From the NCBI GenBank assembly GCA_040285825.1, contig JAUPSS010000003.1, positions 1,984,001 through 2,048,000 of the forward strand: a DNA stretch of 64,000 nt, written 5' to 3'. Positions 4,000 through 46,700 of this stretch are shown here, one piece after another (positions within the stretch are counted from its first letter, which is position 1; each line of letters begins with the position of its first letter). The notes beneath the pieces were generated by a model, which saw only the letters and a program-made list of their open reading frames with translations, was not told the DNA's origin and did no database searches. Position numbers and translations under genes: made by a program. The DNA is from Eukaryota sp. TZLM1-RC (lineage: Eukaryota > Protista > Metamonada: BaSk clade).

Positions 4000-5898
4000 C
4001 TTTAGGTGTTAAACAAGGCGATCCACTTGGTCCTTTTTTCTTTTGTCTGGCAATTCATCCATTATTGTGCGAATTAAAAGAAAAATTCCCAGAAATAGAT
4101 ATTGTAGCATATATTAATTTATTGAATTTGCACACTTGATTAAATTAAATCATAACTAATGGGACGACTATCATTAAACCAAGATTTCCTCTACAAAATC
4201 TTGAATGCATATATGGATGACATTTCTGTAATTGCTTCTATTACAATTCTCAAACAAATAGCAACTTTTATTCAACAGCGTTATGAAGATATTGGTCTCT
4301 CATTGAATATCTCCAAATGTTTGATTATTGGCCATGAACCAATTGATTTTTTCATTAATGATGTCAATGTCCCCTTTATCAATTATGATCAGTCTGGTTT
4401 TCGTTTTTTGGGTTGTTATTTCGGAAATATTGAAGAAGTCAAAGGCCAACTTTCGACTCTGTTGACTCAATTTGGAAATGAATTAGAATCAATAGAAAAT
4501 TTAAATATTGAGAAACATTGTAAATTCTTTTTCCTAAAAATTTGTTATTCTGGAAAATTTACTCATATTTTGAAATCAACATCACCATCAATTTCTTTGG
4601 AGTTTTGTCGAATTTTTAATGAACAAAGAACCAATTTTTTGCCAGATTATTAGAAATTGATGCATCTCAGTTACGAAGCCACATTTTTTGTGGTACAAAT
4701 TTTGGTGGTGTTGATTTTCATAAACCAAGCTACCTTTGTGAAGCTGCCTTTATTGGAGGTGGTGAAAATTTTATTTATGAATTTGTGAATCGTTTTTCTG
4801 AAAAAATTGTGGCAGCTCTTATCTGTTTTCTTTGCAACAGGAAATTGAAACTATTTCACCCAATATTTGGTCTAAATGTTTCCCCTCTGATATTGTGGAA
4901 CTTCCTCCAAGAAGCTTGCTCTTTTTACCACTGACTTTTGCAAAATTGCAGAAAAAAATCTTGAAAGTTTTAGAAAACTTGGATTATATTGTACGTCTTA
5001 GCCTGGCTAAGGAAAAAAATCCCGTTTTTGCAAACTTTTTGATTGATCTTGAAGACAGTTGCTCAAGTTGCCTAATCTCCCAAATTCCCAACATTTATGG
5101 CCTTCTACTTAATGATCACCAATGGACGTAATGAGAATGAGATGTTTTCTATGGCCTTGTTCATTACCAAATGATTTAATTTGTCGCTGCAAGAGTGTTG
5201 TTACGCTTTCCCATATTTTAAACTGTAAGTATTTTATAACTTATCGCTCACTTGTTCATGACTCAGTTCGTGATCAATTATATGCCATGTGCAAAAGTTT
5301 CAATATAGAGGCATTTATTGAGCCATATAGTACGTAAGCTGTCTTCAGATCAAACTGATGATTCCTTTGGTAAAAGAAGGGCAGATTTAGTAGCTCCAGG
5401 GATCGATGGTGTTCTCAATGTTGTAGACGTTGTCTCAGTTGATGTTTGCAAAAATTCTGCTGCTCGTTTAGTGTATTCCGCTGATTCGCCGTTATCTAAC
5501 CCCGAAAAACAGAAGATAAAAAAATATGAAGAACCTTTGGCACAGTTAGGTAGAGTGGAACATGTGAAATATCAGTTTGTGCCGTTTGCAATTTCTCTTT
5601 TTGGCAATATTGGACCTTCAGGGTTGCACTTTTTTGAAAATTTCAAAAATGTGTTACTGAATAGGTCTGGTAAAACAATGAACTCCACTTTCTGGTTAAA
5701 TAGAATTGTTTTTTGCATTTTCAAGTCTATTCCAACAATGATTTCAAAGGCACTTTTAGCTATTGGTGTAGAATATGAACGTAATGCTGTGAGTAGGTTC
5801 AGTAATAGTGACGCTTGTTTGGAGGATATTGAATTCTAGATGGGTTTTTTTATCTCAATAATTATTCCAGTTTTAAAAATAAATAAATTGAAAAAAAA
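4000..5898 (+). mobile_element. 5'-truncated CRE family C
   Basis: GVKQGDPLGP, VAYMDD (interrupted), CRC..HILNC, RRADL, ends LEDIEF with A-rich tail. Confidence 0.9.
4115..4206 (-). mobile_element. 92-bp family-B 3'-end insert inside the AYMDD codons of family C
   Basis: TSD GCATATAT at 4107-4114 and 4207-4214. Confidence 0.9.
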
Positions 5899-8749: not shown

Positions 8750-10150
8750 CCAAATAAGACTGATGATTTTGAAAATTTTGTAAAAAAGAAGAATGAACAC
8801 GTGTTTTGATCACCGTTTCATGTTGAATCCTATTGTTTTTACTATTTTTAAAGCAGTTCCTGAAATGATTTCGAAAGCTGTGATGTCTGTCAGTGCACAT
8901 TACGAAAACAGTTTCATGGTGGGGAAGCTTGTTTTGAAGATATTGATGTTTAGACTGTGTTTTTTAGAATAAATTAAATTTGGAAAAAACAAGATTTGTT
9001 TTTTTTCAAAAATCAGGGTAGCAAGAAAACAAATGATTAAGTGACATCCCTTGGGTTTGTGTCTAATTACCAGGAAATCGTATCGGACCTTGTTAGTGCT
9101 AATACTTCCCACTATTTATCTAATTTTGATATACTAAAATCAGGCTTAGAAAATAACAATGAAAAGATTTGGCATCTTTTCATGGCGCTTTCGACTTCAA
9201 TTTGCCATTATTAATAGATTGCCTCCGTTTTTCAATCGAATTAGAGAAGCGTTAGCTAGACAGCAAGCAGATCATTATTTTGCAGAGGAAATCTTGGTTC
9301 CATGAATTTTGTCCCATTAAGGCTTATTTATTCATTTAATAAGGAATATGAAATCATGAAATACACAACTATAACTCTACATCCTCAAAATCTGCCTCAC
9401 CTACATTAAAACAATTAATTACTAAAGATTCAAAAAATTCCCAGATGAAGAGAGTGAATCATAAATTAATTTCACCATTCCCTAAAAAATAGGAAATACA
9501 ATCCTGTTCTGCCAGTAAACACGATTGAAAATTCTTCCAGTTCTTTCCGTTACAACTACAACAAAATCCTCAAGGAAAGCCATAGCAGCCTTACCTAAAA
9601 ATCCAAGCAAAGAAAAAACAAAGAGACATAAATTATATTGGGCATGAGAATTTTCATTTACAGAGGAAATGTGTTTCGCGTATTAGCAATTTTCTATTTT
9701 TGCCAGCAAGAAGAGGATTATTTACATCCGAGTTAATGAGATGTTCGTTAGAAGAATGACAAGGGTCAATAGACATGGCGTTCAAAATAGTGAAACTACC
9801 ATTTAAGCCGGGAACAACCAGATCACCTCTTGTCAGACCCATAGAAGCTCTGTTGTAGCGCGTACTGTCAATATTGGGGTCATCAAGAATTAATTTTAAT
9901 AACAACGGCTCTAAAAAGGAATCTACTCGATATGATTTACACATTACATAAATTTGGTCCCTGGCATTATTATGCTCTTTATTTCTAAATGTAATGAAAT
10001 GTTTACAGTTCAAAAGATGAGTAAACAAAAGAGGTTTACCACAATTACATGTTAAATGATTGGGCAAATTGTTTGGCCATAGAAAACAACAAAATTTCGC
10101 CCCATTAGTTATGAGTTGATTTTGTTAAGTGAGCAAGTTTAATAAATTAA
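8750..10150. mobile_element. Mosaic of degenerate CRE 3' fragments (G +, B +, D-like -, B tail)
   Basis: D-like ORF 9654-10067 (TRGDLVVPG..SIDPC); B C-terminus about 9150-9320; G-like about 8750-8960. Confidence 0.75.
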
Positions 10151-10902: not shown

Positions 10903-12753
10903 ATGGGCTCTGTTCGATTACCTTGGGTATGGGCTGTTTGTTCTGTACTCTTCTTGGTCTTTATTTGCGGTCATCAGTATCACTCTCTTTCTGTCAGCTT
11001 TGATGAGGCATTTAGCTCTCTAAGTCACGATTATACATTTTTTAGTGCAAGATCTTCTTATAGACTTCATATGTATACATTCCTTCTTCTTGCTTCAATG
11101 AACCTTTTACTTCTTTTCAATTTCTTTTCTTTTCGTTTGTCTGTATTACTTCACCCATTCTATTACTACTTCATCAATTCACCTTTACGCAAATTCCTTC
11201 TTCACAAATTCCTCAAGAAGCTCGGAATTCATCCCAAGTACCATCAAGAACTTCGTCACTACATTAGCCGAGGAATTTCTTCACTCCAACCTATCCGATC
11301 GATCGGGTTTTTTGACACCGACCCCCGCCGACCTATTCATTGGAAAGATTTTAGCGAAACCACCAAGATAAACCTTCCTTGTGACAATGCTCGATATCTT
11401 TTTAAAGAATACTCTCCTCTGGTGTTTCAATCAATAAGGCAACGCTTTGGTATCACTGACGAGGCTTTTAAGCATTCTCTTTGCTCTACTGATTCTCTAA
11501 TGATTACTCCCACATCTGGAAAATCTGGTTCAATGTTCTTCTTTTCGGCAGATTCTTTCTATGTTATCAAAACAATGTCTCATTCCGAGTCACTTTTTCT
11601 CCGAAAGATTTTGTTTTCTTATTATCAGCACATGATGGCTAATCCACATTCCCTACTTACTTGGTTTCTTGGGCATTATCGGATAGAACGTAATGGTCAT
11701 AAGACTCACTTGGTGGTGATGCGTAATGTGTTTGATTCCGAACTCAAAATTCATGAGGAGTATGATTTGAAAGGCTCTACTTTTGGGCCGTGAAGTTTCC
11801 CAGAAAAGAGGAAGAGCCCAAAAGTTACTTGGAAAGATAATGATTTATTACGTAGAAGAGGGTTTAATTGTGTCAAATTGGGAAGTATAAAGAAAAAGGC
11901 ACTTTTTCAGCAATTAATAGCTGATGTTGGGTTTTTATCATCTGTAAACATAATGGACTATTCTCTACTACTAGGAATACATCATACAGACGTTTCTACA
12001 CCTGAACCCATGTCTCCACTATGTAACTCCTATGAGGGGGGCTTGGATGAAAGTGATGTGAGTATTGACCTAGATCATGAACATCCTTACCTTACCAAAG
12101 CTTATCTGTGTCAGGGTCCAAGAGCACCTGCTTTTGTTGGTCCAAAAGGGCTTACACTGTCAATGTTCCAGCTTGAAGAGGGTGGTTTTGCTTCAACTTC
12201 AGATTTCCCCCATGCTGGTTCTCGGTACTCCATTCCTATCAGCCAACGTCGCAAGACTGTTGTTGGTCGTCCTCCTCCAACAAGAACACTTCCACTAACC
12301 CCAGAGGTAGAGCGAAAGTTTAGCATTGGATCACATAATTCTGCAACTTCAAGAGCTTCTGTAGATTCTTGGGTTCAGCCAATTTTCATTTCTCCACCCA
12401 TTCACACAGATAGACCTAGTTTTGAGGGCTCTGACAGTGATCCTGACGTCTCTTCCCGTTCTTCTGACATTGCTCTTGGTGAGAGTTTCAATCCTCTCCA
12501 TGGACTCTTCAACATAAGGGACCAATGTACAAAACTAGAAAATACAAGGAAAGAGGGCCCTGAACCTGAATTAGAACGAGGAAATGAAATTTATTTCTTT
12601 GGAATAATTGATATCTTGCAAAAATATAATACTAGAAAACGACTTGAAAGTTCGGCTAAAAGTTTATTTAACAAATCTGATGCAATTTCTGCTGTTGCAC
12701 CTGAACATTATGCTAGAAGGTTTCTGAATTTTATGGATAAACTGATAGAGTAG
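10903..12753 (+). CDS. PIP kinase (PIP5K/PIP4K family) with hydrophobic N-terminal extension; one apparent stop between compensating homopolymer indels
   Basis: FKEYSP.VF..IR, SGKSGS.FF.S.D..YVIKT, YDLKGST, IMDYSLLLGIH, FGIIDILQKY; ORFs 10903 and 11878 are in the same frame; +1 T and -1 C versus the 30440-31981 copy. Confidence 0.8.
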
Positions 12754-30439: not shown

Positions 30440-31981
30440 CTACTCTATCAGTTTATCCATAAAATTCAGAAACCTTCTAGCATAATGTTCAGGTGCAACA
30501 GCAGAAATTGCATCAGATTTGTTAAATAAACTTTTAGCCGAACTTTCAAGTCGTTTTCTAGTATTATATTTTTGCAAGATATCAATTATTCCAAAGAAAT
30601 AAATTTCATTTCCTCGTTCTAATTCAGGTTCAGGGCCCTCTTTCCTTGTATCTTCTAGTTTTGTACATTGGTCCCTTATGTTGAAGAGTCCATGGAGAGG
30701 ATTGAAACTCTCACCAAGAGCAATGTCAGAAGAACGGGAAGAGACGTCAGGATCACTGTCAGAGCCCTCAAAACTAGGTCTATCTGTGTGAATGGGTGGA
30801 GAAATGAAAATTGGCTGAACCCAAGAATCTACAGAAGCTCTTGAAGTTGCAGAATTATGTGATCCAATGCTAAACTTTCGCTCTACCTCTGGGGTTAGTG
30901 GAAGTGTTCTTGTTGGAGGAGGACGACCAACAACAGTCTTGCGACGTTGGCTGATAGGAATGGAGTACCGAGAACCAGCATGGGGGAAATCTGAAGTTGA
31001 AGCAAAACCACCCTCTTCAAGCTGGAACATTGAAAGTGTAAGCCCTTTTGGACCAACAAAAGCAGGTGCTCTTGGACCCTGACACAGATAAGCTTTGGTA
31101 AGGTAAGGATGTTCATGATCTAGGTCAATACTCACATCACTTTCATCCAAGCCCCCCTCATAGGAGTTACATAGTGGAGACATGGGTTCAGGTGTAGAAA
31201 CGTCTGTATGATGTATTCCTAGTAGTAGAGAATAGTCCATTATGTTTACAGATGATAAAAACCCAACATCAGCTATTAATTGCTGAAAAAGTGCTTTTTT
31301 CTTTATACTTCCCAATTTGACACAATTAAACCCTCTTCTACGTAATAAATCATTATCTTTCCAAGTAACTTTTGGGCTCTTCCTCTTTTCTGGGGAAACT
31401 TCACGGCCCAAAGTAGAGCCTTTCAAATCATACTCCTCATGAATTTTGAGTTCGGAATCAAACACATTACGCATCACCACCAAGTGAGTCTTATGACCAT
31501 TACGTTCTATCCGATAATGCCCAAGAAACCAAGTAAGTAGGGAATGTGGATTAGCCATCATGTGCTGATAATAAGAAAACAAAATCTTTCGGAGAAAAAG
31601 TGACTCGGAATGAGACATTGTTTTGATAACATAGAAAGAATCTGCCGAAAAGAAGAACATTGAACCAGATTTTCCAGATGTGGGAGTAATCATTAGAGAA
31701 TCAGTAGAGCAAAGAGAATGCTTAAAAGCCTCGTCAGTGATACCAAAGCGTTGCCTTATTGATTGAAACACCAGAGGAGAGTATTCTTTGAAAAGATATC
31801 GAGCATTGTCACAAGGAAGGTTTATCTTGGTGGTTTCGCTAAAATCTTTCCAATGAATAGGTCGGGGTCTATTGGTGTGACGTAGTTTGTTGAGGATAGA
31901 AGAGATTCCAAGCATTATATATTGCCCGACTTCCCGATTCTCCTGGGATGTAGGAGATGACGGAGAGTCATTGGGGGACAT
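30440..31981 (-). CDS. Phosphatidylinositol phosphate kinase (PIP5K family), 513 aa
   Basis: Intact ORF with IMLGI, GKSGS, IKT, DLKGS, MDYSLL, GIIDIL motifs. Confidence 0.95.
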   Translation of the reverse strand: MSPNDSPSSPTSQENREVGQYIMLGISSILNKLRHTNRPRPIHWKDFSETTKINLPCDNARYLFKEYSPLVFQSIRQRFGITDEAFKHSLCSTDSLMITPTSGKSGSMFFFSADSFYVIKTMSHSESLFLRKILFSYYQHMMANPHSLLTWFLGHYRIERNGHKTHLVVMRNVFDSELKIHEEYDLKGSTLGREVSPEKRKSPKVTWKDNDLLRRRGFNCVKLGSIKKKALFQQLIADVGFLSSVNIMDYSLLLGIHHTDVSTPEPMSPLCNSYEGGLDESDVSIDLDHEHPYLTKAYLCQGPRAPAFVGPKGLTLSMFQLEEGGFASTSDFPHAGSRYSIPISQRRKTVVGRPPPTRTLPLTPEVERKFSIGSHNSATSRASVDSWVQPIFISPPIHTDRPSFEGSDSDPDVSSRSSDIALGESFNPLHGLFNIRDQCTKLEDTRKEGPEPELERGNEIYFFGIIDILQKYNTRKRLESSAKSLFNKSDAISAVAPEHYARRFLNFMDKLIE

Positions 31982-32609
31982 AGTGTTGGCTTGTAAAGGA
32001 TGACTAAAAGGAGAAACAATTTGATTAAAACAAAATAATTGTTTTCATCTCAACTTTCTGGGAAAATGTTGAACCATTGTCTTCATCTTGTCTTTTTGAC
32101 AGCAAATGTTTGCCGAAAATTGACCTATTTGAGTTTCAATCAACTGTTGATGGATTCTGTTAATGCCCCTTATCGAACTTTGGACAAACTTGATAACAAA
32201 CTCAACTCTTGAAATTATTCAAAGAAGACAATGATGTGAATGTTGAAAAATTATAATAAAGTTTTAAACCCACAAAAAGTCTTTTATCTACTACACATTT
32301 CTTTGAATAGTAGGGAAATTTTAGTAACCAATCAACAATGAACTATCAGGGTGTTTGAATGAATAAGTTTTATCAAACAAATAGGCTCGCCCTAGTAGGC
32401 TTTGTTTTATGTTGTTTGTCGAAATTTAGACTTATTCAAGTTGGTGTGATCTGCTGATAACATTTGTCAAAAGAAAATGATCGAACGATGCCTGATGTAT
32501 CTGAACTATTGTCTCCAGTGTGTTTATAATGTCAATAAGGTTAATTAAAGCACAGTTATGCTACATTGTATTCAGTCGTTCAAATTATCAGTCGTTCAAA
32601 TTTATAGGT

Positions 32610-32880
32610 TACTGTGAATTTCACTTATCATGCATTCCCCTGTGAAATTCACTCCTGTTTTCAACTCCCTCAATGTCTACTCACAGGCTGTAAGAGACAT
32701 GTAGCATCATTTGACAAAGACAATCATGATCTTCATCAATGGGCTACCTCACTTAAATACACCTACTGCTTTCACAGAACAAAGCCTCGCGACTTGATGT
32801 ATCTAAGTGGATCTACCAAATGCTACTAGGGCATTTGTAGATCGGTCTCAAAAGTTTTTGTTTCTGTATGCTCAGGTTCC
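32610..32880 (-). ncRNA. Candidate Fanzor omega-RNA scaffold
   Basis: Immediately 3' of the Fanzor stop; helices at 32810-32843, 32750-32809 (three-way junction with GCGA and GAAA tetraloops), 32701-32747, 32673-32700, 32614-32652; G-U pairs form only on the minus strand. Confidence 0.6.
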
Positions 32881-32884
32881 CCAT

Positions 32885-34414
32885 TCATCTTCTCAACAGA
32901 GCATCTGGGCAAATGTATCTTTCCGGCCACAATTCCGCTTTCTTCTTAATTTGAATATTTTTTGCAGCGGAAATATCTCTGTCATATACTATTTGACACT
33001 CAGTACAAATACGCATCTGCCATGAGCCTGCTTGAATATTTTCGGCCATGCAACAACTTGACATTTTGCTTGTATTAAATTCACTGGTTGACAAGTGCTT
33101 CACGTCCTTTTGATAACACAACCATTTTCTGAAAGCCCTTGCTGATCCATATCGATTGACTTTTCGGCAATGAGAAGGGAAATTAGCAGAACCCACAGCA
33201 AGATAGAGTTTTTCAGGATGTCCAGCCAGCCTTTGAAATTTGTTGAGAGTCTCTCTGAACCGTCTCTCTTTTCGTCTTCGGTTATCAAATTTAATTATTT
33301 TCCATTTCTGGCGATTACTTTCCAAATAAACTTTCCTCCTAACCAAATTCCAATGGTTCAAATATTGGTTGAAATTTTGAACGGAATATTGGTTGGGAGA
33401 GTGTTTACTGGGTGAAGGATTTGTCCTGTACCTCCTGCCAGTTGGACAAGGAATAACTCCACATTGATTATCATCTAAGAAGTAACCACATAATCTTGAT
33501 TGGCCCAGATCAACACCAATAAGGGGCCTTTCAGGTAAAATTTCGACTGGATGTCTACGTCTTCGACGGGGCATTTTTTTAGTGCCCTTCAACTGTGTTT
33601 CTCTGGTTTTGTTGGCATCAGGGTCACTTTTCATTTCATTTTTTGATCTTCTTTTCTTTTTCGGTGGTTCATCCAGCTCATCTGTGTTTTCTGAGTCATT
33701 ATTTTTACCTTCAAAGGTCAAAAGCAGTTCATTACCATTAGTTTTCAATAAAATTTTTTTAAATCTATTTTTCAAACTTTTTCTGTTGATATTAAATTTT
33801 TGGTAAGGACATTGTTTGAATACTCGTTTCAGACATGTATTTCTGATAAACTTTGTTTTGGAAGATAATCCTTCAATAATTGGAAATTTTTTCACAAAGT
33901 GGAAAATTTGTGAAGGTACCTCAATAAATTTAGAACCTTTATGAGAAGCTAAAGGTATTATTCTAAATTTCTTCCAGCAATGCATATGAGAAAAGAAAGT
34001 GAGTAAGTATTGTGAAATTTTAAGATTGAAGAGAAAAAGCTCACTAATTTCCTTTGATGAAAAAGTGATTTTATCATGTGAGGACAGTAGGGAGGCAGTG
34101 GTAGGAAATCTTTGCAGGAGATTCAAGATAAACCTACATGCATTCAATAAAAAAAATCTTTCTCTTGAATTATTCAAATTGAAATTGATGGTGATGACGG
34201 TCATAAACAGATACCATACATCCTGTTCCACTAAAGCTCTAGATGCCAACGGAAAATTTAGAAGAAAAGATTGAAGTAATAAAGAAGCTTCATGACAAAT
34301 CTCGGTGACCAAAGGAAGGTCAGTCCGAATTTGTTGCACCGCTGCAGGGGTCAGCAGCGAGTTAAGTGCACAAGACCGAGTGAATACACGTGACACAGAG
34401 TGGGTGTCTGTCAT
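32885..34414 (-). CDS. Fanzor1-like (eukaryotic TnpB) RNA-guided RuvC nuclease, 509 aa
   Basis: RuvC-I IGVDLG; LAVG with Gly at the canonical RuvC-II Glu and relocated Glu in SEFNTSK; zinc finger CC..C-x2-C; RuvC-III DRDISAAKNI; Fanzor1-like FRIIPL and KTNG motifs; basic NLS-like PPKKKRR and PRRRRR. Confidence 0.88.
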   Translation of the reverse strand: MTDTHSVSRVFTRSCALNSLLTPAAVQQIRTDLPLVTEICHEASLLLQSFLLNFPLASRALVEQDVWYLFMTVITINFNLNNSRERFFLLNACRFILNLLQRFPTTASLLSSHDKITFSSKEISELFLFNLKISQYLLTFFSHMHCWKKFRIIPLASHKGSKFIEVPSQIFHFVKKFPIIEGLSSKTKFIRNTCLKRVFKQCPYQKFNINRKSLKNRFKKILLKTNGNELLLTFEGKNNDSENTDELDEPPKKKRRSKNEMKSDPDANKTRETQLKGTKKMPRRRRRHPVEILPERPLIGVDLGQSRLCGYFLDDNQCGVIPCPTGRRYRTNPSPSKHSPNQYSVQNFNQYLNHWNLVRRKVYLESNRQKWKIIKFDNRRRKERRFRETLNKFQRLAGHPEKLYLAVGSANFPSHCRKVNRYGSARAFRKWLCYQKDVKHLSTSEFNTSKMSSCCMAENIQAGSWQMRICTECQIVYDRDISAAKNIQIKKKAELWPERYICPDALLRR

Positions 34415-34610
34415 GTAGTGAGAATAAAGAGCTCATCTATCAAATTTTACACTTGTCACCCCATTTTCGACTTCTGGTTGCCTGTTCTGGGAGGTTTTTA
34501 ACCCTCAACTTGGTTTTGGGAGGTTTTCACTATTCCCACACTTTCCCCTCACTTCATAAACTAGGTTCATAAACTAGGTATCCTTTGTAAAAGTTGCACT
34601 GGAGTAGTCA

Positions 34611-35969
34611 ATGACATCCATATACGACCACCTACTACCATGCTTTCTATCTGAGTTCTCTGCTTGTTACATGAACTGCTTTTATCACAAGCCTCCCCTT
34701 CTTGCTCAATTTACAGACCACCGATCTTCGTTTATCAATATTACACTGAAGCACCTCCTCACCTCAGTAATCCGCTCTCTTAAACTCAAAGATCCATCCA
34801 TAACAATATACTCTTCCTACTCTGTCTTTCACTCACATTTACCCCTCCTCTCCTTATCCCAGCGAAAGACACTATGTGAGATCATCTTCTCTACTCTTTC
34901 GCCCTTCCATCCTTCTTCTTCGCCATTAGATCCTCATACTCCATTTTTCTCTCCTGATTCTCTTCATCGCCTCACGCACCTTACCACTACCCTACTCCAA
35001 CAAGAGGAAGCCGGAATTGAGCTAAAAAGTGATGTCGAGTTGAAACTAGTTGAAAAGGTGGCCAGTTTAACCAGAGATTTAGATAAAGCCAATAATGAAG
35101 TAACAAGACAACAACAGAATGTGGTGGATTTGGAGCATAAGTTGATGACTGGTGCTATAAATAGTAACAGTCACGATAACGATTGCGATCAGTTTGATTC
35201 AATTAGCACACCAATGCCTCCTTGTAATGTTAAGAATGGACCGACACCCAGAACAGGAAGGTCTGTGCTGTCACGGTCAATGATATCGGAAACTAGTCAA
35301 CGAGAGTCAAATTTGATGACGTCACCTCGGTCAGAAAAGCAACTCAGAACGGAATTATCACGTGTTACTGAAATTTCTGAACAATTGGAGTTTAAAATCA
35401 GAAATGAAGAGGCCAATAAAGCGGTATTGGTAAACCAAGTTGAAAATTTGAGGAAACAGGTGCAAAATTTGGCAGATGATCTAGTGGATCATGTGAAAGT
35501 TAAACGAAAATTTCAATCAGCCAAAGAAAGGATCAGTGAGTTGGAAGATGAGCTCAGTGGTGTAAAATCTGATTTTCAGAAAACAAGCACTGAACTCTCA
35601 CACATTAATCAAATTTTGGAAAAAGAACGGACTGAGAACAAGCGAAAGTTGTACAAATATCAATCGTTCTATGACAGGGTCAACAATAATCAATCAGTTT
35701 CTGTTCAATCAGATTTATTAATGATTGATCTCAACCAACAACTCGAGGATGCAAATCTAGCATTAAAAGGAAGAGAAATTTTGACACTCAAGCTAAAAAA
35801 AAGTCATACAGAGCGCCAAAATTTGATTGAGCAATATGGCCAGATGAGATCCCAACTAGAGTCGTTAGAGGTGGTTAATTCAAAGTTAAACGAGGAAGTT
35901 GAAAATTTGACAAGGGAGTGTGTTTGTTTAAAAACAAAATTTGATATTCAAAATGGTGACGTGGCGTGA
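34611..35969 (+). CDS. Hypothetical coiled-coil protein, 452 aa
   Basis: Long intact ORF with ATG start; heptad-rich C-terminal two-thirds. Confidence 0.75.
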   Translation: MTSIYDHLLPCFLSEFSACYMNCFYHKPPLLAQFTDHRSSFINITLKHLLTSVIRSLKLKDPSITIYSSYSVFHSHLPLLSLSQRKTLCEIIFSTLSPFHPSSSPLDPHTPFFSPDSLHRLTHLTTTLLQQEEAGIELKSDVELKLVEKVASLTRDLDKANNEVTRQQQNVVDLEHKLMTGAINSNSHDNDCDQFDSISTPMPPCNVKNGPTPRTGRSVLSRSMISETSQRESNLMTSPRSEKQLRTELSRVTEISEQLEFKIRNEEANKAVLVNQVENLRKQVQNLADDLVDHVKVKRKFQSAKERISELEDELSGVKSDFQKTSTELSHINQILEKERTENKRKLYKYQSFYDRVNNNQSVSVQSDLLMIDLNQQLEDANLALKGREILTLKLKKSHTERQNLIEQYGQMRSQLESLEVVNSKLNEEVENLTRECVCLKTKFDIQNGDVA

Positions 35970-37750: not shown

Positions 37751-40700
37751 GACAATAATTGGTCCAATTGATTCATTGAGAACAATTGCTGAAATTGTTC
37801 AACAGCGCTATTATCAAATTGGTCTTTCTGTAAATATTTTCAAATGTTTATTGATTGGTAGAGAGCCTGCTGATCTCATTATTGATGATCAAAGTGTTCC
37901 TTTTATCAATTATTTTGAATCAGGATTTCGTTTTTTAGGTTGTTATTTAGGCAATTTTGATGAAATTCGAAATCAACTTTCCTCTCTTTTGGATAATTTT
38001 GAAGAAGAATTGATGGTTTTTTCAGATTTAAATATTGAAAAACATCTCAAATTTTTCTTCCTCAGAATTTGTTATTCAGGGAAATTTACTCATATTTTAC
38101 GATCAACGTCACCATTTATATATCTCGAATTTTGCAGAATTTTTAATGAATTAAGAACAAAATTTTTGGCTAATTTGCTCGATATTGATTCTTGTTTTTA
38201 CGTAGTCATATTTTTTGTAGCACAGAATTGGCAGGCCTGCATTTTCACAAATCAAAATATTTGTGTAAAGCCGCATTCATCGGTGGAGGCAAAAATTTCG
38301 TTTTTGAATTTTTGAAACGTTTTCTTGAAACCAGCATTTAATAGAATGTTGTGTTAGTGACTATTTAGTGTCTTTGCAGAGTGAAATTGAATGCATCTCT
38401 CCTCACATATAGACCAAATGCTTTCCTGCTGATATTCAAGAAATTCCACCCAGGAGTTTGATTTCCTTGAAATTTGCATATGCTAAATTGCAGAAACAGA
38501 TATTAAAAGTTTTTGAAAACTTGGATTTCACTGTTCGTCTTAGCTTGGCTAAAGAAAAGAATCCCTTTTTTGCAAACTTTTTAATTGATCTTAAGAAAGT
38601 AGCTCAAGTTGTCTTATAAATTTTTTCTCCCTCCCTTAGTCAACCCTCTCATATTTCACTTTCTGTCAAGGCGTCAAAGTCTTGTATAAAAATAGTTGCT
38701 TATATGGATGATATATCCTTGATTGGTTCATTTGATTTACTAGAATTGGTTGCTCAAGAAATTGCCGATTCATATGAAAATATTGGCCTTTATCTTAATG
38801 CGAACAAATGTCTTCTGATTGGCTCTTCTGCTCAAGTTCTTGTGATTAACGATTCTATTGTCCCTTTTACTAATTATAGTAGTGATGCTTTTAAGTTCCT
38901 TGGTTGTTGGTTAGGAAACGTGCCTCAAATTCAGAATGATTTGCAAGTTATTTTGGAAAAAATGAAAATTGAACTTGATTCAATTTCTTATTTAGATACA
39001 GAAAAACATATTAAATTTTTCATGCTTAAAATTTGCTACACTGGGAGAATAACCCACATTTTGAGATCTTGTGCTCCTTCCATAGCATTAGATTTTTGTC
39101 GTTCATTTAATTCATTGAGAACAGAATTTTTTGCTGATTTATTGGATGTAGAACCAGGAATGTTGAAAAGTCACTTATATTCTTCAGCAAATTTGGGTGG
39201 TATTGGATTTACTAAATCTTCAATTTTGTGTCAATCAGCATTCTTGGGTGGTGCCAAAAATTTTATTTATGAATTTTCTCGTAGATTTCCTGATGGTTCT
39301 CATCTGTTAGTTCCCAATTGCAGTCCTTATTTGTATGAGTTATCTTGTGAACTTAAAAAATTGCCGCCACAAATTTGGACCAAACGTTTTCCTCAATCAA
39401 TTCAAAAAATTCCAAACCGATCTCTTTTTAATTTACAGTTTTGCTGTAAAAAGCTTCAACATAAATTGTCAAAGATTTTTGAAAGCTTGGATTTTGATGT
39501 TAGACTTGGCTTGGCCAAGAAAAAGAATCCCGCTTTTGCAAATCTTTTACAAGATATGTGTGACAGTGCTTCTTCTGCCTTAGTAACAACAATTCCCCAA
39601 GTTTATGGTACTCTCATAACCGATTCTGCTTGGACTCTCAATATGAGATTTCGTTCCTTTATCTGGCCTGATAATTTACCTCATAATTTAATTTGTAAAT
39701 GTTCTCGAGAAATTACAACTACTCATTTGTTAAATTGTAAACATTGTATTACTTTTAGAAGCAAAGTTCATGATGCTGTAAGAGACCAGTTATATTGTAT
39801 GTGTAAATCTCATAGAATTGAATCCTTCTTGGAACCTCTGTTGTCAAGTCTGTTTGATGCTGAAGATGATTTTCGTAAGAATAATAGAAGTGATGTTATA
39901 TTACCTGGATTAGATGGAAGTTTCATTTTATTGGATGTAATGTCTGTTGATCCTTGTAATGCCTCAAATGAAAGGCTAGTTAATTCTGAAATTCATAATC
40001 CCCTTTCAAATGCTGAAAATTTTAAATTCAAAAAATACAATGAACCTTTGTCCAAATTGGCCAGACTACAGCATGCAAAATAGAATTTGTATCCATTTGT
40101 ATTTTCCCTTTTTGGTTCACTTGCACCAACTGCTTTACGTATTTGGGATGATTTTGAAATGATTGTAAAGAGAAGAACTGGCAAAAATTTCAACAGATTG
40201 TTTTGGCAAAATAGAATTGTGTTTTCTATTTTTAAGGGGATGTCGAAGATGGTTTCTGATGCTTTGCTTTCTCTTGGATCTCACTATGAGAAAGTTGCAT
40301 CTAGTGTTTTTGTTCTGGGAGAGATGGATTTTGTAGATGTTGATTTATAGGTTTTGAATAAAATTAAAATTTTGGTCAAAAAAAAGTTGTCTTATTTCCC
40401 AGATTCCAAATGTATATGGTCCATTATTAAATGATCATCAATGGACAACTGCCTTCAGGATGAGGTGTTTTCTGTGGCCATGTAGTGTGCCAAATGATTT
40501 GATTTGTCGTTGTGGTCAGCTCATTAATCTGAATCATTTATTTAATTGCAAATTTAATATTACATATCGCTCAGTTGTTCACGATGCTGTTAGAGACCAA
40601 CTATACGCTATGTGCAAAAGTCATCACATTGAAGCTTTTGTTGAACCACTTGTGCGAAGGTTGTCATCTGAAAATGAAGATGAAAATACTTTTGGGAAAC

Positions 40701-41220
40701 GCCGTGCTGATTTAATTACCCCTGCGTCTGATGGTGTTATTAAAGTTGTTGATGTTGTCACTGTTGATGTTTGTAAAGACTCAGCAATTGATTTTGCTAA
40801 AAGAGATGAAACTCCACTTTGCTTTTCTGAAAAGAGCAAAATCAAAAAGTACAATGAACCCTTATCTCAGCTAGGACGTGTTGAGCATGTCAAGTATCAG
40901 TTGGTTCCATTTGCTGTTTCTCTTTTTGGTAACATTGGAATATCTGGCATTAAATTTCTTGAAAGTTTCAGAAGTTTAATAAAAGAAAGAGCAGGAAAAG
41001 AATTGAACTTCAATTTCTGGCACAATAGAATTGTTTTTAGTATTCTTAAAGCAATTCCAGAAATGTTGACCAAAGCACTGTTACAATTAGGAATAGAGTA
41101 TGAAAATCGCGAGGTGAAAAGATTGGATGATGTTGATGCGTGTATTGAGGATATTGAGTTCTAGTTTTTTCTTTAATGTTTTGTTAGCGTTGAAAATAAA
41201 TTTCAATTTATTCCAGTTTA
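37750..41220 (+). mobile_element. CRE family F, split by a family A insertion
   Basis: FRFLGCYLG, ICYSGKFTH.. then CRC..HLFNC, RRADL..DV, ends IEDIEF. Confidence 0.88.
38618..40383 (+). mobile_element. CRE family A, both ends intact, large internal deletion
   Basis: A 5' end joined at about 38685 to IKIVAYMDD; TSD AAGTTGTCTTAT (38606-38617, 40384-40395). Confidence 0.92.
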
Positions 41221-41329
41221 TCTCCCGAATTATGACAATCATGTTTTCCCATATCCATTCAAGAAATTCCAGACAGAAGTTTGTATTCATTAAAATTTGC
41301 GTTGAAAAAGCTCCAACGACATCTTTTTG

Positions 41330-42400
41330 CAAAAATTTGAAAGCAAGGATTTTATTGTTCGACTTAGCACGGCTAAGAAAGAAAAATCCTGCTTTGCAAA
41401 TTTTGATTGATTTGAAGGACAGTTCATCTGCAGTTTTGATAAATCAAATTCCCCAGATTTATGGCCTATTTTTGAATGACGACCAATGGACCACTGCTAT
41501 GAGAATGCGTTGTTATTTATGGCCTTTTAATTTGCCCAATGATTTATTTTGCAAATGTGGAGCTAGTTTGACATTATCACATTTATTTAATTGCAATAGA
41601 TTTATTTCCTATCGTTCTACGTTGCATGATGCAGTTAGAGATCAAATCCATGCAATGTGTAATTCTTATCATATTGAATCTTTTGTAGAACCTTTGTTGA
41701 GGTCTCTTAATATAAATGAAAGCGTAAGAGATTCAGAATATTGAAAATGACGTGCTGATGTTGTTGTGCCCTCGTTTGATGATGTCATGAATGTTGTTGA
41801 TGTCGTAACAGTGGATGTTTACAAGAAAAATGCCTTGAAAAATGCTCAATCCGAAGTATCCCCCCTTGATGACTCCGAATTGTACAAACGGAAAAAATAT
41901 TTTTTTTAAAACTGGAATATTTATTGAGATAAAAAAAACCCATCTAGAATTCAATATCCTCCAAACAAGCGTCACTATTACTGAACCTACTCACAGCATT
42001 ACGTTCATATTCTACACCAATAGCTAAAAGTGCCTTTGAAATCATTGTTGGAATAGACTTGAAAATGCAAAAAACAATTCTATTTAACCAGAAAGTGGAG
42101 TTCATTGTTTTACCAGACCTATTCAGTAACACTTTTTTAAAATTTTCAAAAAAATGCAACCCTGAAGGTCCAATATTGCCAAAAAGAGAACAAATATGCA
42201 AATCCTTTAAAAGAATTGAAACATGTTCGCCATGTAGATTACCAAATTTGCCCATTTGCTATATCGTTGTATGGTCGTCTTGGAAAAACTGCTATGAATT
42301 TTATTGATGATTTTGAAAATCTTGTGAAAAGAAGAATGAATAAGCGTTTTGATCGTCGCTTGTGGCTAAATCGTATTGTTTTTACTATTTTCAAATCAAT
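41330..42400 (+). mobile_element. CRE family G fragment with antisense family C insert (about 41900-42190)
   Basis: CKC..HLFNC, LHDAVRD, RFDRRLWLNRIVF; C 3' end on the minus strand. Confidence 0.85.
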
Positions 42401-43778
42401 TCCTAAAATTTTTCATGCTTAAAATTTGCTACACTGGGAGAATAACCCACATTTTGAGATCTTGTGCTCCATCCATAGCTTTAGATTTTTGTCGTTCTTT
42501 TAATTCATTGAGAACAGAATTTTTTGCTGATTTATTGGATGTAGAACCAGAAATGTTGAAAAACCACTTATTTTCTTCAGCAAATTTGGGTGGTATTGGA
42601 TTTACTAAATCTTCAATTTTGTGTCAATCAGCATTCTTGGGTGGTGGCAAAAATTTTATTTATGAATTTTCTCGTAGATTTCCTGATGATTCTCATCTGT
42701 TAGTTCCCAATTGCAGTCCTTATTTGTATGAGTTATCTTGTGAACTTGAAAAATTGCCGCCACAAATTTGGACCAAATGTTTTCCTCAATCAATTCAAGA
42801 AATTCCAAACCGATCTCTTTTTAATTTACAGTTTTGCTGTAAAAAGCTTCAACAAAAATTGTCAAAGATTTTTGAAAGCTTGGATTTTGATGTTAGACTT
42901 GGCTTGGCCAAGAAAAAGAATCCCGCTTTTGCAAATCTTTTACAAGATATGTGTGACAGTACTTCTTCTGCCTTAGTAACAACAATTCCACAAGTTTATG
43001 GTACTCTCTTATCCGATTCTGCTTGGACTCTGAATATGAGATTTCGTTCCTTTATCTGGCCTGATAATTTACCTCATAATTTAATTTGTAAATGTTCTCG
43101 AGAAATTACAACTACTCATTTTTTAAATTGTAAACATTTTATTACTTTTAGAAGCAAGGTTCATGATGCTGTAAGAGACCAGTTATATTGTATGTGTAAA
43201 TCTCATAGAATTGAATCCTTCTTGGAACCTCTGTTGTCAAATCTGTTTGATGCTGAAGATGATTTTCATAAGAATAATAGAGGTGATGTTATGTTACCTG
43301 GATTAGATGGAAGTTTCATTTTATTGGATGTAATGTCTGTTGATCCTTGTAATGCCTCAAATGAAAGGCTAGTTAATTCTGAAATTCATAATCCCCTTTC
43401 AAATGCTGAAAATTTTAAATTCAAAAAATACAATGAACCTTTGTCCAAATTGGCCAGTCTACAGCATGCAAAATACAATTTGTATCCATTTGTATTTTCC
43501 CTTTTTGGTTCACTTGCACCAACTGCTTTACGTTTTTTGGATGATTTTGAAATGATTGTAAAGAGAAGAATTGGCAGAAATTTCAACAGATTGTTTTGGC
43601 AAAATAGAATTGTGTTTTCTATTTTTAAGGGGATGTTGAAGATGGTCTCTGATGCTTTGCTTTCTCTTGGATCTCACTATGAGAGAGTTGCATCTAGTGT
43701 TTTTGTTCTGGGAGAGATGGATTTTTTAGATGTTGATTTATAGGTTTTGAATAAAATTAAAATTTTGGTAAAAAAAAA
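42400..43778 (+). mobile_element. 5'-truncated CRE family A
   Basis: ORF to ..DFLDVDL, A tail. Confidence 0.92.
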
Positions 43779-46700
43779 GTTTTTAACAAATCAAAGGAAA
43801 TGCCTGAAGGACCAGCAGCTTTTCCTTTTGGTAATTTAGCAACGGCATTCAATACTTCTTGAGCCTGAAATGGATTATGGAGCCAAAATTGACAAATAGA
43901 AGGCTTACTGGGGCAAAAATGTTCAGTTGGATGGAGGGATTTCAATTTTTCAACAATTTCGAGATTAGTATCAGCCAGTTTTCCCGAAAAGATATTTTTT
44001 AATCCGCTTCCATATCTACCTCTCAAAAACAATTTTCTTGCTTGAAAAGATGAATTAGCTTTTCTCTGTTTTGGTTTGTAATTAATTTTCTTCTTATTCT
44101 TTTTGGCAAAGAATTTCCAAAATCTTGTTATGTTCCATTTGTTTAATTTCAGTTGCGAAGAAAAAGAACGCATTTCCATTGACAAAGGAACAGAACTGGC
44201 AGGACTCACCTCTACAGGAATTTTAACAGGTGCACGAAGAGAATCACTTGTTTGACAGTCAAAACAAAACAAGAGAGGGCGACCATTAGAAGAATTAGAG
44301 AGGAACTTTTTGCAAAGAGGACAACTGTAAAAAAAAGGACTCAAATGAAAGGCTTGTTAATTCTGAAATTCATAATCTTCTTTCAAATGCTGAAAATTTC
44401 AAACTCAAAAGATACAATGAACCATTGTCCAAATTGGCCAGTCTACAGCATGCAAAATACAATTTGTATCCATTTGTATTTTCCCTTTTTGGTTCACTTG
44501 CACCAACTGCTTTACGTTTTTTGGATGATTTTGAAATGATTGTAAAGAGAAGAATTGGCAGAAATTTCAACAGATTGTTTTGGCAAAATAGAATTGTGTT
44601 TTCTATTTTTAAGGGGATGTTGAAGATGGTCTCTGATGCTTTGCTTTCTCTTGGATCTCACTATGAGAGAGTTGCATCTAGTGTTTTTGTTCTGGGAGAG
44701 ATGGATTTTTTAGATGTTGATTTATAGGTTTTGAATAAAATTAAAATTTTGGTAAAAAAAAAGTTTTAACAAATCAAAGGAAATGCCTGAAGGACCAGCA
44801 GCTTTTCCTTTTGGTAATTTAGCAACGGCATTCAATACTTCTTGAGCCTGAAATGGATTTTCGAGCCAATATTGACAAATAGAAGGCTTACTGGGGCAAA
44901 AATGTTCAGTTGGATGGAGGGATTTCAATTTTTCAACAGTTTCGAGATTGGTATCAGCCAGTTTTCCCGAAAAAATATTTTTTAATCCGCTTCCATATCT
45001 ACCTCTCAAAAACAATTTTCTTGCTTGAAAAGATGAATTAGCTTTTCTCTGTTTTGGTTTGTAATTAATTTTCTTCTTATTCTTTTTGGCAAAGAATTTC
45101 CAAAATCTTGTTATGTTCCATTTGTTTAATTTCAATTGCGAAGAAAAAGAACGCATTTCCATTGACAAAGGAACAGAACTGGCAGGACTCACCTCTACAG
45201 GAATTTTAACAGGTGCACGAAGAGAATCACTTGTTTGACAGTCAAAACAAAACAAGAGAGGGCGACCATTAGAAGAATTAGAGAGGAACTTTTTGCAAAG
45301 AGGACAACTGTAAAAAAAAGGACTCAAATGAAAGGCTTGTTAATTCTGAAATTCATAATCTTCTTTCAAATGCTGAAAATTTCAAACTCAAAAGATACAA
45401 TGAACCATTGTCCAAATTGGCCAGTCTACAGCATGCAAAATACAATTTGTATCCATTTGTATTTTCCCTTTTTGGTTCACTTGCACCAACTGCTTTACGT
45501 TTTTTGGATGATTTTGAAATGATTGTAAAGAGAAGAATTGGCAGAAATTTCAACAGATTGTTTTGGCAAAATAGAATTGTGTTTTCTATTTTTAAGGGGA
45601 TGTTGAAGATGGTCTCTGATGCTTTGCTTTCTCTTGGATCTCACTATGAGAGAGTTGCATCTAGTGTTTTTGTTCTGGGAGAGATGGATTTTTTAGATGT
45701 TGATTTATAGGTTTTGAATAAAATTAAAATTTTGGTAAAAAAAAAGTTTTTAACAAATCAAAGGAAATGCCTGAAGGACCAGCAGCTTTTCCTTTTGGTA
45801 ATTTAGCAACGGCATTCAATACTTCTTGAGCCTGAAATGGATTTTCGAGCCAATATTGACAAATAGAAGGCTTACTGGGGCAAAAATGTTCAGTTGGATG
45901 GAGGGATTTCAATTTTTCAACAGTTTCGAGATTGGTATCAGCCAGTTTTCCCGAAAAAATATTTTTTAATCCGCTTCCATATCTACCTCTCAAAAACAAT
46001 TTTCTTGCTTGAAAAGATGAATTAGCTTTTCTCTGTTTTGGTTTGTAATTAATTTTCTTCTTATTCTTTTTGGCAAAGAATTTCCAAAATCTTGTTATGT
46101 TCCATTTGTTTAATTTCAGTTGCGAAGAAAAAGAACGCATTTCCATTGACAAAGGAACAGAACTGGCAGGACTCACCTCTACAGGAATTTTAACAGGTGC
46201 ACGAAGAGAATCACTTGTTTGACAGTCAAAACAAAACAAGAGAGGGCGACCATTAGAAGAATTAGAGAGGAACTTTTTGCAAAGAGGACAACTGTAAAAA
46301 AAAGGACTCAAATGAAAGGCTTGTTAATTCTGAAATTCATAATCTTCTTTCAAATGCTGAAAATTTCAAACTCAAAAGATACAATGAACCATTGTCCAAA
46401 TTGGCCAGTCTACAGCATGCAAAATACAATTTGTATCCATTTGTATTTTCCCTTTATGGTTCATTTGCACCAACTGCTTTACGTTTTTTGAATGATTTTG
46501 AATTGATTGTAAAGAGAAGAATTGGCAGAAATTTCAACAGATTGTTTTGGCAAAATAGAATTGTGTTTTCTATTTTTAAGGGGATGTTGAAGATGGTCTC
46601 TGATGCTTTGCTTTCTCTTGGATCTCACTATGAGAGAGTTGCATCTAGTGTTTTTGTTCTGGGAGAGATGGATTTTTTAGATGTTGATTTATAGGTTTTG

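Follow-up and report, generated by a model that had tools for sequence, protein, structure and literature searches.

A Fanzor1 gene of the metamonad Skoliomonas litria in a probable decayed copy of a repetitive, non-autonomous DNA transposon

Among the described systems that come closest to the locus analysed here are the SpuFz1 loci of the fungus Spizellomyces punctatus (8GKH), which consist of a single ORF in an element flanked by inverted repeats and contain no transposase; 42 such loci are known, 19 of them full length (Saito et al., 2023; PMC10432273). Elements that carry only a Fanzor1 gene and are bounded by Mariner terminal inverted repeats (TIRs) and TA duplications have been described as well (Bao and Jurka, 2013; PMC3627910). 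Further systems for comparison are the Helitron2 elements CRe-1/2/3 of Chlamydomonas and the TnpB proteins of the bacterial IS200/IS605 and IS607 elements (ISDra2, 8H1J/8EXA). For both TnpB and Fanzor, the guide corresponds to the DNA immediately beyond the right end of the element (PMC10432273).

The present locus lies in a stretch of 64,000 nucleotides, referred to below as the window, on contig JAUPSS010000003.1 of assembly GCA_040285825.1 from TZLM1-RC, which is the flagellate Skoliomonas litria (PMC11603281). We read positions 32610-34595 of its minus strand, with a probability of roughly 85%, as a decayed member of a non-autonomous DNA transposon family that has many copies in S. litria and carries a gene for a Fanzor1 RNA-guided nuclease. 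The family resembles the SpuFz1 loci in having one intron-less Fanzor1 ORF in a short, transposase-less element with flanking inverted repeats, in its number of complete and partial copies, which runs to tens in a genome, in a catalytic set of Asp, relocated Glu and Asp that is accompanied by Gly at the canonical RuvC-II position and by a C4 zinc ribbon, and in a structured RNA at the 3' end that reaches the right end, which is here a candidate predicted from the nucleotide sequence. Unlike SpuFz1, it is found in a metamonad and not in a fungus, its intact element reaches a greater length of about 3.5 kb, of which the left arm makes up about 0.9-1.4 kb, a single Skoliomonas sequence has no detectable similarity to SpuFz1 outside the TNB region, and the window copy is short of 142 residues and of its left end. 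Table 1 provides an overview of the features.

Table 1. Features of the Fanzor1 locus, in window coordinates.
Feature	Positions	Strand	Basis or remark
Window copy of the Fanzor1 element, right end to left truncation point	32610..34595	-	1986 bp
Fanzor1 ORF, 509 aa	32885..34414	-	Shortened derivative of the 651-aa protein
5' leader, presumed promoter, common to all copies	34415..34595	-	Alignment of 5' sides
Deletion junction, 426 nt in frame	34189..34190	-	2 bp microhomology; blastn gap of 424-426 bp against L002-L005; protein alignment A1
Two basic NLS-like patches, residues 250-258 and 279-288	33551..33667	-	Read from the sequence; just before RuvC-I
RuvC-I Asp codon, D302	33509..33511	-	GVDLG motif; invariant column D444 of family alignment A2
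Gly408 codon, canonical RuvC-II position	33191..33193	-	Invariant column G550 of A2
Relocated catalytic Glu codon, E445	33080..33082	-	TSEFNTSK motif; invariant column E587 of A2
C4 zinc ribbon (TNB domain), C454-C473	32996..33055	-	PF07282; invariant Cys columns in A2
RuvC-III Asp codon, D480 (RD motif)	32975..32977	-	YDRDIS; invariant columns R621 and D622 of A2
Candidate omegaRNA scaffold, 275 nt, stop codon to right end	32610..32884	-	Fold, compensatory changes, conservation
Right-end hairpin, 11-bp stem GTGAATTTCAC / GTGAAATTCAC, 17-nt loop	32614..32652	-	Outer arm is the right TIR; pair I25 in L004
Right terminal inverted repeat, GAAATTCACAGTA	32610..32622	-	Identical in S. litria and GEM-RC copies
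Flank, putative guide of an omegaRNA from the window copy	32590..32609	-	By analogy with TnpB and Fanzor; sequence single-copy

The Fanzor1 gene and its surroundings

The reading frame is open over all of its 1530 nt, with neither a stop nor a frameshift, as had been stated in an earlier reading made from the DNA letters of the window, referred to as the sequence-only reading. Downstream lies a PIP5K gene (30440-31981, Pfam E = 2.6e-84), and a divergent coiled-coil ORF of 452 aa begins at 34611, 196 bp upstream of the Fanzor1 ORF. Both neighbours had been named before; the coiled-coil ORF, described there as a host gene, is a putative one, and a homologue search at E <= 1e-5 gave none. The reported absence of a transposase was confirmed within about 12 kb of the Fanzor1 ORF, where one reverse-transcriptase fragment was all that was found.

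The ORF is a real Fanzor1-type (eukaryotic TnpB-like) nuclease gene, as seen from its motifs, the profile match to SpuFz1 and the RuvC fold. All three RuvC acidic residues are present, with D302 in a GVDLG that conforms to the (V/I)D(L/P)G motif of RuvC-I. The column of Gly408 is aligned with the Gly of SpuFz1, and a Gly at this canonical RuvC-II place is conserved in Fanzor1 (G500; Bao and Jurka, 2013; PMC3627910). The SEFNTS motif around E445 is aligned with DEYKTS of SpuFz1, the Glu of which is, by an offset estimate, the Mg-binding E541 of Saito et al. (2023; PMC10432273). Gly408 and E445 are 37 residues apart, and the relocated Glu of Fanzor1 is described about 36 residues past the Gly in an ExxTS motif (G500/E536 in Bao and Jurka, E541 in SpuFz1; PMC3627910, PMC10432273). 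The zinc ribbon has the pattern CC...CxxC (C454, C455, C470, C473), and residues 426-487 match Pfam PF07282 with 28.6 bits against a cut-off of 26.3. The two basic patches are kept in the homologues of the isolates GEM-RC and TZLM3-RCL; judged by their composition they are NLS-like and may serve nuclear import. The acidic residues, the zinc finger, the basic patches and the Gly with its relocated Glu were all part of the sequence-only reading, and its assignment to Fanzor1 is upheld by both the profile and the structure searches described below.

When the window protein alone was compared with the PDB sequences, only a weak match in the TNB region was obtained (UnCas12m4a, E = 0.013), and therefore a profile of the family, built on alignment A2, was used. 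Its best match among solved structures is SpuFz1 with E = 4.4e-12 over 349 positions (294-642), in which the G, the E and the RD are aligned. TnpB, Cas12f and Cas12m match this profile in the TNB part only, and no Fanzor2 chain is among the matches listed at E <= 1. The NCBIfam TnpB models gave scores far under their cut-offs for the protein, and a profile search of a set of 5.8 billion proteins found nothing outside Skoliomonas among the 8000 candidates with the most shared words.

An AF2 model was made for a 651-aa relative from an alignment that is only nine sequences deep. The model is poor as a whole, with a mean pLDDT of 49.7, and gives no confident fold for the N-terminal lobe; pLDDT is below 50 for residues 1-167 and about 70-89 for residues 430-651. 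The latter, C-terminal part fits the RuvC folds of Fanzor, Cas12f and TnpB with Z about 12-13, namely Z = 12.6 to SpuFz (rmsd 3.4, 171 aligned), 12.6 to PpFz, 12.8 to Cas12f and 11.6 to the TnpB nuclease core. The family thus shares the RuvC and zinc-ribbon core with bacterial TnpB, as well as the placement of a guide RNA, here a candidate, at the 3' end of the gene with its end at the right end of the transposon. Unlike bacterial TnpB, it has a eukaryotic host, NLS-like patches, the relocated RuvC-II Glu and a larger N-terminal lobe. By analogy with the characterised members of these groups, RNA-guided DNA cleavage is predicted as the activity of the family.

Copies and ends of the element

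The 90% cluster of the protein contains 82 members on at least 8 contigs, a copy number that is derived from annotated protein clusters and contig depth and not from a genome-wide count at the DNA level. S. litria has further clusters, GEM-RC has at least 11 members, and TZLM3-RCL has three subfamilies with at least 9, 10 and 14 members; the divergence of the family among the three Skoliomonas isolates follows the host tree. The stretch 32610-34595 is common to the window copy and seven other S. litria copies. In the coordinates of L001, the locus of the window copy (window coordinate = 44415 - L001 coordinate), this shared stretch starts at 9820 or 9849 and ends at 11805. Contigs of DNA runs branch at 32610, 34568 and 34595, and their word depth is about 50 within the element as opposed to about 2 outside it (about 25-fold). 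Copies are 94-98% identical in DNA across the leader, the ORF and the 3' region, with unrelated flanks. The leader contains a 13-bp tandem duplication (ACCTAGTTTATGA x2, 34554-34579) and stops in the window at the truncation point, while L002, L003 and L009 continue into the left arm.

These data bear on the proposal of the sequence-only reading that the gene might be domesticated, i.e., a single-locus host gene derived from a Fanzor and kept for a cellular function. Its open frame, its place between two called genes with no transposase nearby and the lack of paired repeats in the window copy fit such a gene. However, the copy number, which had been set beforehand as the check on domestication, is high, with 82 members at 90% identity or more on many contigs and further members of the family in the two sister isolates, the near-identical copies share a conserved right end, the relatives bear terminal inverted repeats, and the window copy is a deleted form and not the conserved one. 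Domestication is thus extremely unlikely, and the other option of that reading, a transposase-less non-autonomous element, is supported.

The state of the copies varies. The ORF of L004 is intact with 651 aa, five of seven sampled relatives (L002, L003, L005, L009, L011) are broken by stops or frameshifts, and large parts of L010 are deleted. Compared with the consensus, pN/pS is 0.2-0.38. The private changes of the window copy, eight synonymous and eight non-synonymous, do not have a neutral ratio, but clearly dead copies show the same ratio, and private substitutions can therefore not separate selection from decay.

Full-length elements of the family are bounded by the inverted repeats TACTGTGAATTTC ... 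GAAATTCACAGTA. Nine copies show a sharply defined right end. The partner repeat is found with 13 of 13 bases at the left end of L006, and in L003, L004, L005 and L010 the left terminus is a version of it that contains a 4-nt insertion. The window copy keeps the right repeat only, as its left arm of roughly 1.1-1.4 kb and its left repeat are lost at the break at 34595. The earlier observation that no paired terminal repeat is present is hence true of this copy, and the reason is the truncation of its left end, since full-length relatives do carry TIRs. The ends read TA-CTGTG...CACAG-TA: recognisable left termini begin with TA-CTGTG, with single-base variants in L004, L005 and L007, and right ends are CACAG-TA or CACAA-TA in eight of nine readable copies, where the terminal TA could, in the sequences compared, be a target duplication or a part of the repeat.

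The resulting architecture resembles that of PUl-4, a non-autonomous Tc/mariner element with a Fanzor1 gene only, short TIRs and TA at both ends (Bao and Jurka, 2013; PMC3627910). Unlike for PUl-4, the 64-kb window and 11 loci revealed no Mariner/Tc1/IS630 transposase that shares these TIRs, nor any other DDE transposase between the repeats. The TA-flanked repeats suggest a Tc1/mariner/IS630-type enzyme as the mover, and we infer from them a placement of the Skoliomonas element in the Tc1/mariner superfamily. We also asked whether an MJ1316-domain ORF upstream of several copies belongs to the element as a second, conserved gene; neither the GEM-RC nor the TZLM3-RCL loci contain it, and it is therefore a lineage-specific passenger.

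A one-ended, Helitron-like pattern was our first reading of the ends, according to which the family would move by Helitron-type or other HUH rolling-circle transposition and not as a cut-and-paste TIR element. The 3' end and the subterminal hairpin are constant, the points of 5' truncation vary and internal deletions occur, and the same pattern of frequent 5' truncation, internal deletions, almost always intact 3' ends and a 3' hairpin is described for CRe-1/2/3 (PMC3627910). However, this reading was dropped because the right end recurs, exactly inverted, at the start of the longest copies in two species, as in L006. In addition, the left terminus is common to four S. litria copies, including L010 despite its otherwise different left arm, and the repeats are symmetric without a CTRR end. 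The terminal TA on either side is more in keeping with Tc1/mariner-type elements. Unlike CRe-1/2/3, the Skoliomonas family has true TIRs, no Helitron-type end and no visible link to a RepHel protein, which makes rolling-circle transposition very unlikely; its TIR-bounded ends also differ from those of Y1 or serine-recombinase systems with hairpin ends.

In the reading as a non-autonomous TIR transposon, an intact element consists, in this order, of the left TIR, a left arm that is non-coding or carries gene fragments, a short leader, the intron-less 651-aa Fanzor1 ORF and the 275-nt structured 3' region, the final 13 nt of which form the right inverted repeat. To move, it would need a transposase that acts in trans. 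The window copy, having one repeat only, could no longer be excised.

The in-frame deletion in the window copy

The sequence-only reading had described the gene as intact and compact. The protein of the family has 651 aa, and the window copy lacks 426 nt in frame, i.e., 142 residues (76-217), in addition to its left arm; the small size is thus a deletion in one copy and the gene is not intact. The contigs of other copies diverge exactly at 34189/34190, and the deletion is absent from every relative examined. Residues 76-217 are present and conserved in the GEM-RC and TZLM3-RCL proteins, and, although the proteins of the three species are only 32-59% identical, the deleted segment contains the motif RQLAxNVKxxLPKI...WxKNF in nearly invariant form. 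As a result, the N-terminal WED/REC lobe of the window copy is incomplete, while the RuvC and zinc-ribbon parts, the NLS-like patches and the 3' RNA region show no interruption.

In SpuFz1, R96, Q129, Q130 and N133 read the TAM, and Q148 and R157 hold the heteroduplex (PMC10432273). These residues lie in the N-terminal REC stretch to which, by position and predicted helices, the deleted segment probably corresponds. The shortened protein has thus probably lost a helical segment of the REC lobe for TAM reading and heteroduplex holding, and therefore the 509-aa protein is most likely inactive.

It is conceivable, on the other hand, that this copy encodes a natural miniature Fanzor1 of 509 aa that is still an active RNA-guided nuclease and does not need the 142 residues. 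The deletion preserves the frame exactly, the remaining ORF is free of stops and frameshifts, as opposed to the broken majority of the sampled relatives, and the catalytic residues, zinc ribbon, NLS-like patches and 3' RNA region are all unchanged. Chance alone, however, keeps the frame in one of three deletions, and the conservation of the lost segment in three species, its match to the REC stretch with the TAM and heteroduplex residues of SpuFz1, and the absence of the deletion, at whose junction the contigs of the other copies branch, from the relatives examined make this explanation unlikely. If it were true, the active protein would have a size some 20% below the 638 aa of SpuFz1, and the deletion would mark a part of the REC lobe that a Fanzor1 can do without.

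The candidate omegaRNA and the significance of the family

The 275-nt region between the stop codon and the right end is, judging from its sequence, probably the scaffold of an omegaRNA, because it is conserved above the CDS, has a strand-specific fold and shows compensatory changes. The sense strand folds with an MFE of -85.9 kcal/mol (z = -4.2) and the antisense strand with -68.0 kcal/mol (z = -3.2). The GEM-RC homologue forms the same stems (z = -5.0), and RNAalifold finds 76 pairs, five of which show compensatory changes. Between species, the region is 74.5% identical overall and 79-95% in its core, compared with 61.9% for the CDS and 43% for its third positions. An Rfam search gave no family for the region, and the TZLM3-RCL locus L008 contains no recognisable homologue of the scaffold.

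If the family works as proposed for TnpB, the guide would be read from the DNA past the right end of each copy, and a full-length Fanzor-omegaRNA complex would cut guide-matching DNA next to a TAM, which may help the element to persist. The RNA part of the window copy could still be made.

No mention of metamonads was found in the main texts of four surveys of Fanzors, in the supplement to Saito et al. (2023) or by a combined literature search; the present analysis documents a lineage-specific Fanzor1 family in the Metamonada and removes the lead of a compact, domesticated Fanzor as mistaken. The family persists in three Skoliomonas isolates with a candidate 3' RNA scaffold that is better conserved than the protein and with at least one intact 651-aa copy (L004). 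With its nuclease, candidate omegaRNA, right end and varied putative guides, it offers a natural set for asking what Fanzors do for TIR transposons, and the deleted window copy is a natural test of the need for the REC segment.

Assignment of the nuclease family to Fanzor1

The window contains one copy of a multicopy, non-autonomous Fanzor1 element with terminal inverted repeats; this copy is truncated on the left and has lost an internal segment, and as read from the sequence its nuclease core and candidate omegaRNA are unbroken. Exactly this protein has a single coding locus, on contig JAUPSS010000003.1 (assembly GCA_040285825.1, 'Eukaryota sp. TZLM1-RC'). This isolate is Skoliomonas litria, an anaerobic free-living metamonad, with GEM-RC as its sister lineage and TZLM3-RCL branching deepest within Skoliomonas (PMC11603281). 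The uninterrupted ORF described in the sequence-only reading was recovered, together with the three RuvC acidic residues, the zinc finger and the two NLS-like basic patches.

Coordinates of the element, its protein motifs and features at related loci
Feature	Sequence	Position	Detail
509-aa ORF	window	32885-34414 (-)	ATG start
RuvC-I motif	509-aa window protein	D302	GVDLG; read from sequence
Canonical RuvC-II place	509-aa window protein	G408	LAVGSANF; read from sequence
Relocated Glu	509-aa window protein	E445	TSEFNTSK; read from sequence
Zinc ribbon	509-aa window protein	C454, C455, C470, C473	CC...CxxC; read from sequence
RuvC-III motif	509-aa window protein	D480	YDRDIS; read from sequence
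Two basic patches	509-aa window protein	250-258, 279-288	directly N-terminal of RuvC-I; read from sequence
PIP5K gene	window	30440-31981	Pfam, E = 2.6e-84
Coiled-coil ORF	window	34611-35969 (+)	452 aa
Right end/PIP5K start	window	32610/31981	629 bp; gene calls
Right end/gene start	L010	6149/6177	gene calls
Right end/gene start	L011	7231/7272	gene calls
Right end/gene start	L007	8242/8306	gene calls
Right end/gene start	L002	8230/8328	gene calls
Right end/gene start	L003	7942/8044	gene calls
MJ1316-domain ORF	L002	5373-5795 (-)	140 aa
MJ1316-domain ORF	L009	4371-4793 (-)	140 aa
MJ1316-domain ORF	L003	5277-5522	shorter
Second repeat family	L001 (locus of the window copy)	625-1934, 4053-5332	window ~39083-43790
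Second repeat family	L004	2949-4212	
Second repeat family	L002	11476-13527	
Lone GTGAAATTCACAGTA	L004	10312-10326	15 nt
Two AATTTGAACGACTGA units	window	32572-32602 (-)	near-tandem, 15 nt each

Searched singly, the window protein matched only the zinc-ribbon (TNB) region of a Cas12m, and it scored 28.6 bits against Pfam PF07282 (Cas12f1-like TNB; gathering score 26.3). The profile built from the nine-sequence family alignment (A2) matched Fanzor1 of Spizellomyces punctatus (SpuFz1, 8GKH) with E = 4.4e-12 across 349 profile positions, and its matches to TnpB, Cas12f and Cas12m were confined to the zinc ribbon. The D, G, E, cysteine and RD columns are invariant among the nine sequences, and the Gly, the ExxTS Glu and the RD pair of the Skoliomonas family align with counterparts in SpuFz1. 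Bao and Jurka describe as Fanzor1-specific a Gly and a Glu about 36 residues downstream (G500/E536; PMC3627910), and by our offset estimate the SpuFz1 residue aligned to the family Glu is E541, which binds Mg (PMC10432273). The AlphaFold2 model of a 651-aa relative was poor overall (pLDDT 49.7), with values of 70-89 for residues 440-651; this C-terminal part gave Z = 12.6 to SpuFz and PpFz and Z = 12.8 to Cas12f, and the Foldseek match list consisted nearly entirely of Cas12f, TnpB and Fanzor. Language-model look-alikes were TNB/DUF8286 proteins, the majority from giant viruses. At the level of sequence motifs, profile match and modelled RuvC fold the family is Fanzor1, as had been proposed.

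Element ends, copies and surroundings

Nine copies of two species have the same sharply defined right end, 3' of the Fanzor gene (...GTGAAATTCACAGTA). The left sides vary among copies, which first suggested Helitron-style one-ended copying, a mode made very unlikely by the inverted left ends of the longest copies. Three S. litria copies (L003, L004, L005) share a left arm of ~1.1-1.4 kb starting with TACTGTGGTTGAATTT, and L010 has a different arm of ~0.9 kb with the same start motif; in GEM-RC, copy L006 starts with TACTGTGAATTTC, which inverts the right end exactly over 13/13 bases, with more similarity inward. Full elements measure 3445-3757 bp and end in TA-CTGTG...CACAG-TA, with no flank duplication outside these termini. 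The ends are compatible with TA-duplicating Tc1/mariner-type elements, among which Fanzor1-only non-autonomous members have already been described (PMC3627910), and suggest a transposase of this superfamily. The window copy ends abruptly at 34595, and no left arm was present within 10 kb of this break; the earlier statement that there is no paired terminal repeat therefore holds for this copy, which has the right end only, but not for the family. A lone exact copy of GTGAAATTCACAGTA lies ~2 kb past the Fanzor element in L004, adjoining a region of retroelement-derived look, and may be due to chance or mark the terminus of a different element that shares this repeat.

The reading had also considered domestication, which is contradicted by the inverted repeats of the relatives and by the copy number, since 82 proteins, all bearing S. 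litria locus tags and spread over at least 8 contigs, make up the 90% cluster of the window protein, besides further fragment clusters. The GEM-RC cluster has at least 11 members (59% identity), and TZLM3-RCL has three subfamilies with at least 9, 10 and 14 members. Logan contigs of DNA runs branch at 32610, 34189/34190, 34568 and 34595, with a word depth of ~50 within 32610-34595 vs ~2 outside, which is not a copy number and is used solely as agreement with the cluster counts. Two further Fanzor1-like subfamilies of TZLM3-RCL (proteins P0062, 592 aa, and P0066, 604-605 aa) contain several members of identical full length, and the equal lengths of 7 of the 10 in the P0062 cluster suggest recently active copies.

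No DNA transposase occurs within ~12 kb around the Fanzor ORF, only a reverse-transcriptase fragment, in line with the reading. Of the two host genes placed beside it, the downstream PIP5K gene stands; the divergent coiled-coil ORF is there, beginning 196 bp upstream on the opposite strand, but it is unconfirmed as a conserved host gene because no homologue was found at E <= 1e-5. The cut-off left edge of the element lies 15 bp from its ATG (34596-34611), and given this gap any promoter of the ORF would lie inside Fanzor DNA.

In 5 of 10 copies, a called gene on the same strand starts 28-102 bp beyond the right end, and MULE transposase genes occur 4-5 kb downstream in L002 and L003. Several Fanzor copies have a second repeat family nearby, with 86-91% identity from locus to locus. 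In several S. litria copies the left arm carries an ORF coding for an MJ1316 RNA cyclic-end recognition domain (PF04457, E = 1e-9 to 1e-11), divergent from the Fanzor gene with its ATG ~27 bp from the shared leader, followed by an RCC1-repeat-like piece; a 150-bp deletion runs through it in L004 and L005. It resembles a captured host-gene fragment, since it is absent at the GEM-RC and TZLM3-RCL loci. In TZLM3-RCL (L008 3923-5947) an XPG/FEN1-family nuclease gene precedes the Fanzor gene at a distance of 54 bp, both on one strand. The Fanzor 90% cluster also includes P0043, a protein of 674 aa, the length of this XPG product; it looks like XPG except for a terminal stretch resembling Fanzor, which may reflect an annotation artefact or an overlap.

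Internal deletion and constraint

The ORF had been called compact and intact, and neither description holds, as the left end is gone and an in-frame internal deletion has occurred. Of the seven S. litria copies compared with the window copy (L002-L005, L009-L011), all except the heavily deleted L010 contain ~424-426 bp that it lacks between L001 10225 and 10226. L004 encodes an uninterrupted 651-aa protein, from which the window protein differs by the loss of residues 76-217. This block, including the motif RQLAxNVKxxLPKI...WxKNF, is kept in the GEM-RC (646-648 aa) and TZLM3-RCL (659 aa) proteins, and therefore the long form is ancestral. In the low-confidence model the block is all helices; by position, not by alignment, it corresponds to the N-terminal REC stretch of SpuFz1, which holds the TAM-reading R96, Q129, Q130 and N133 and the heteroduplex contacts Q148 and R157 (PMC10432273). 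Frameshifts or stops interrupt L002, L003, L005, L009 and L011. The pN/pS against the family consensus is 0.2-0.38 in every copy, dead copies included, and has no specific bearing on the window copy; it suggests that the source copies were under protein-level constraint.

Candidate omegaRNA and place of the family

A fold of -85.9 kcal/mol (z = -4.2) is predicted for the 275 nt from the stop codon to the right end, vs -68.0 (z = -3.2) for the opposite strand, and the GEM-RC version forms the same stems when folded alone (z = -5.0). RNAalifold gave 76 pairs, 5 with both sides changed yet paired and 13 with one side changed yet paired, and length differences between the species are located in loops. 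Identity between S. litria and GEM-RC is 74.5% in this region (core 79-95%), compared with 61.9% in the CDS and 43% at third positions. No Rfam family matched the region. A non-coding 3' stretch that is constrained more tightly than the protein and ends at the transposon end has the look expected of an omegaRNA scaffold, which makes it a candidate. The AATTTGAACGACTGA units, 8 nt beyond the right end, would fall within the predicted guide.

No mention of metamonads was found in the main texts of the Fanzor surveys consulted, in the Saito 2023 supplement or in a combined literature search, and the genome paper mentions neither TnpB nor Fanzor. Beside these sources, the Skoliomonas family represents a metamonad occurrence of further Fanzor1 elements of an already known type.
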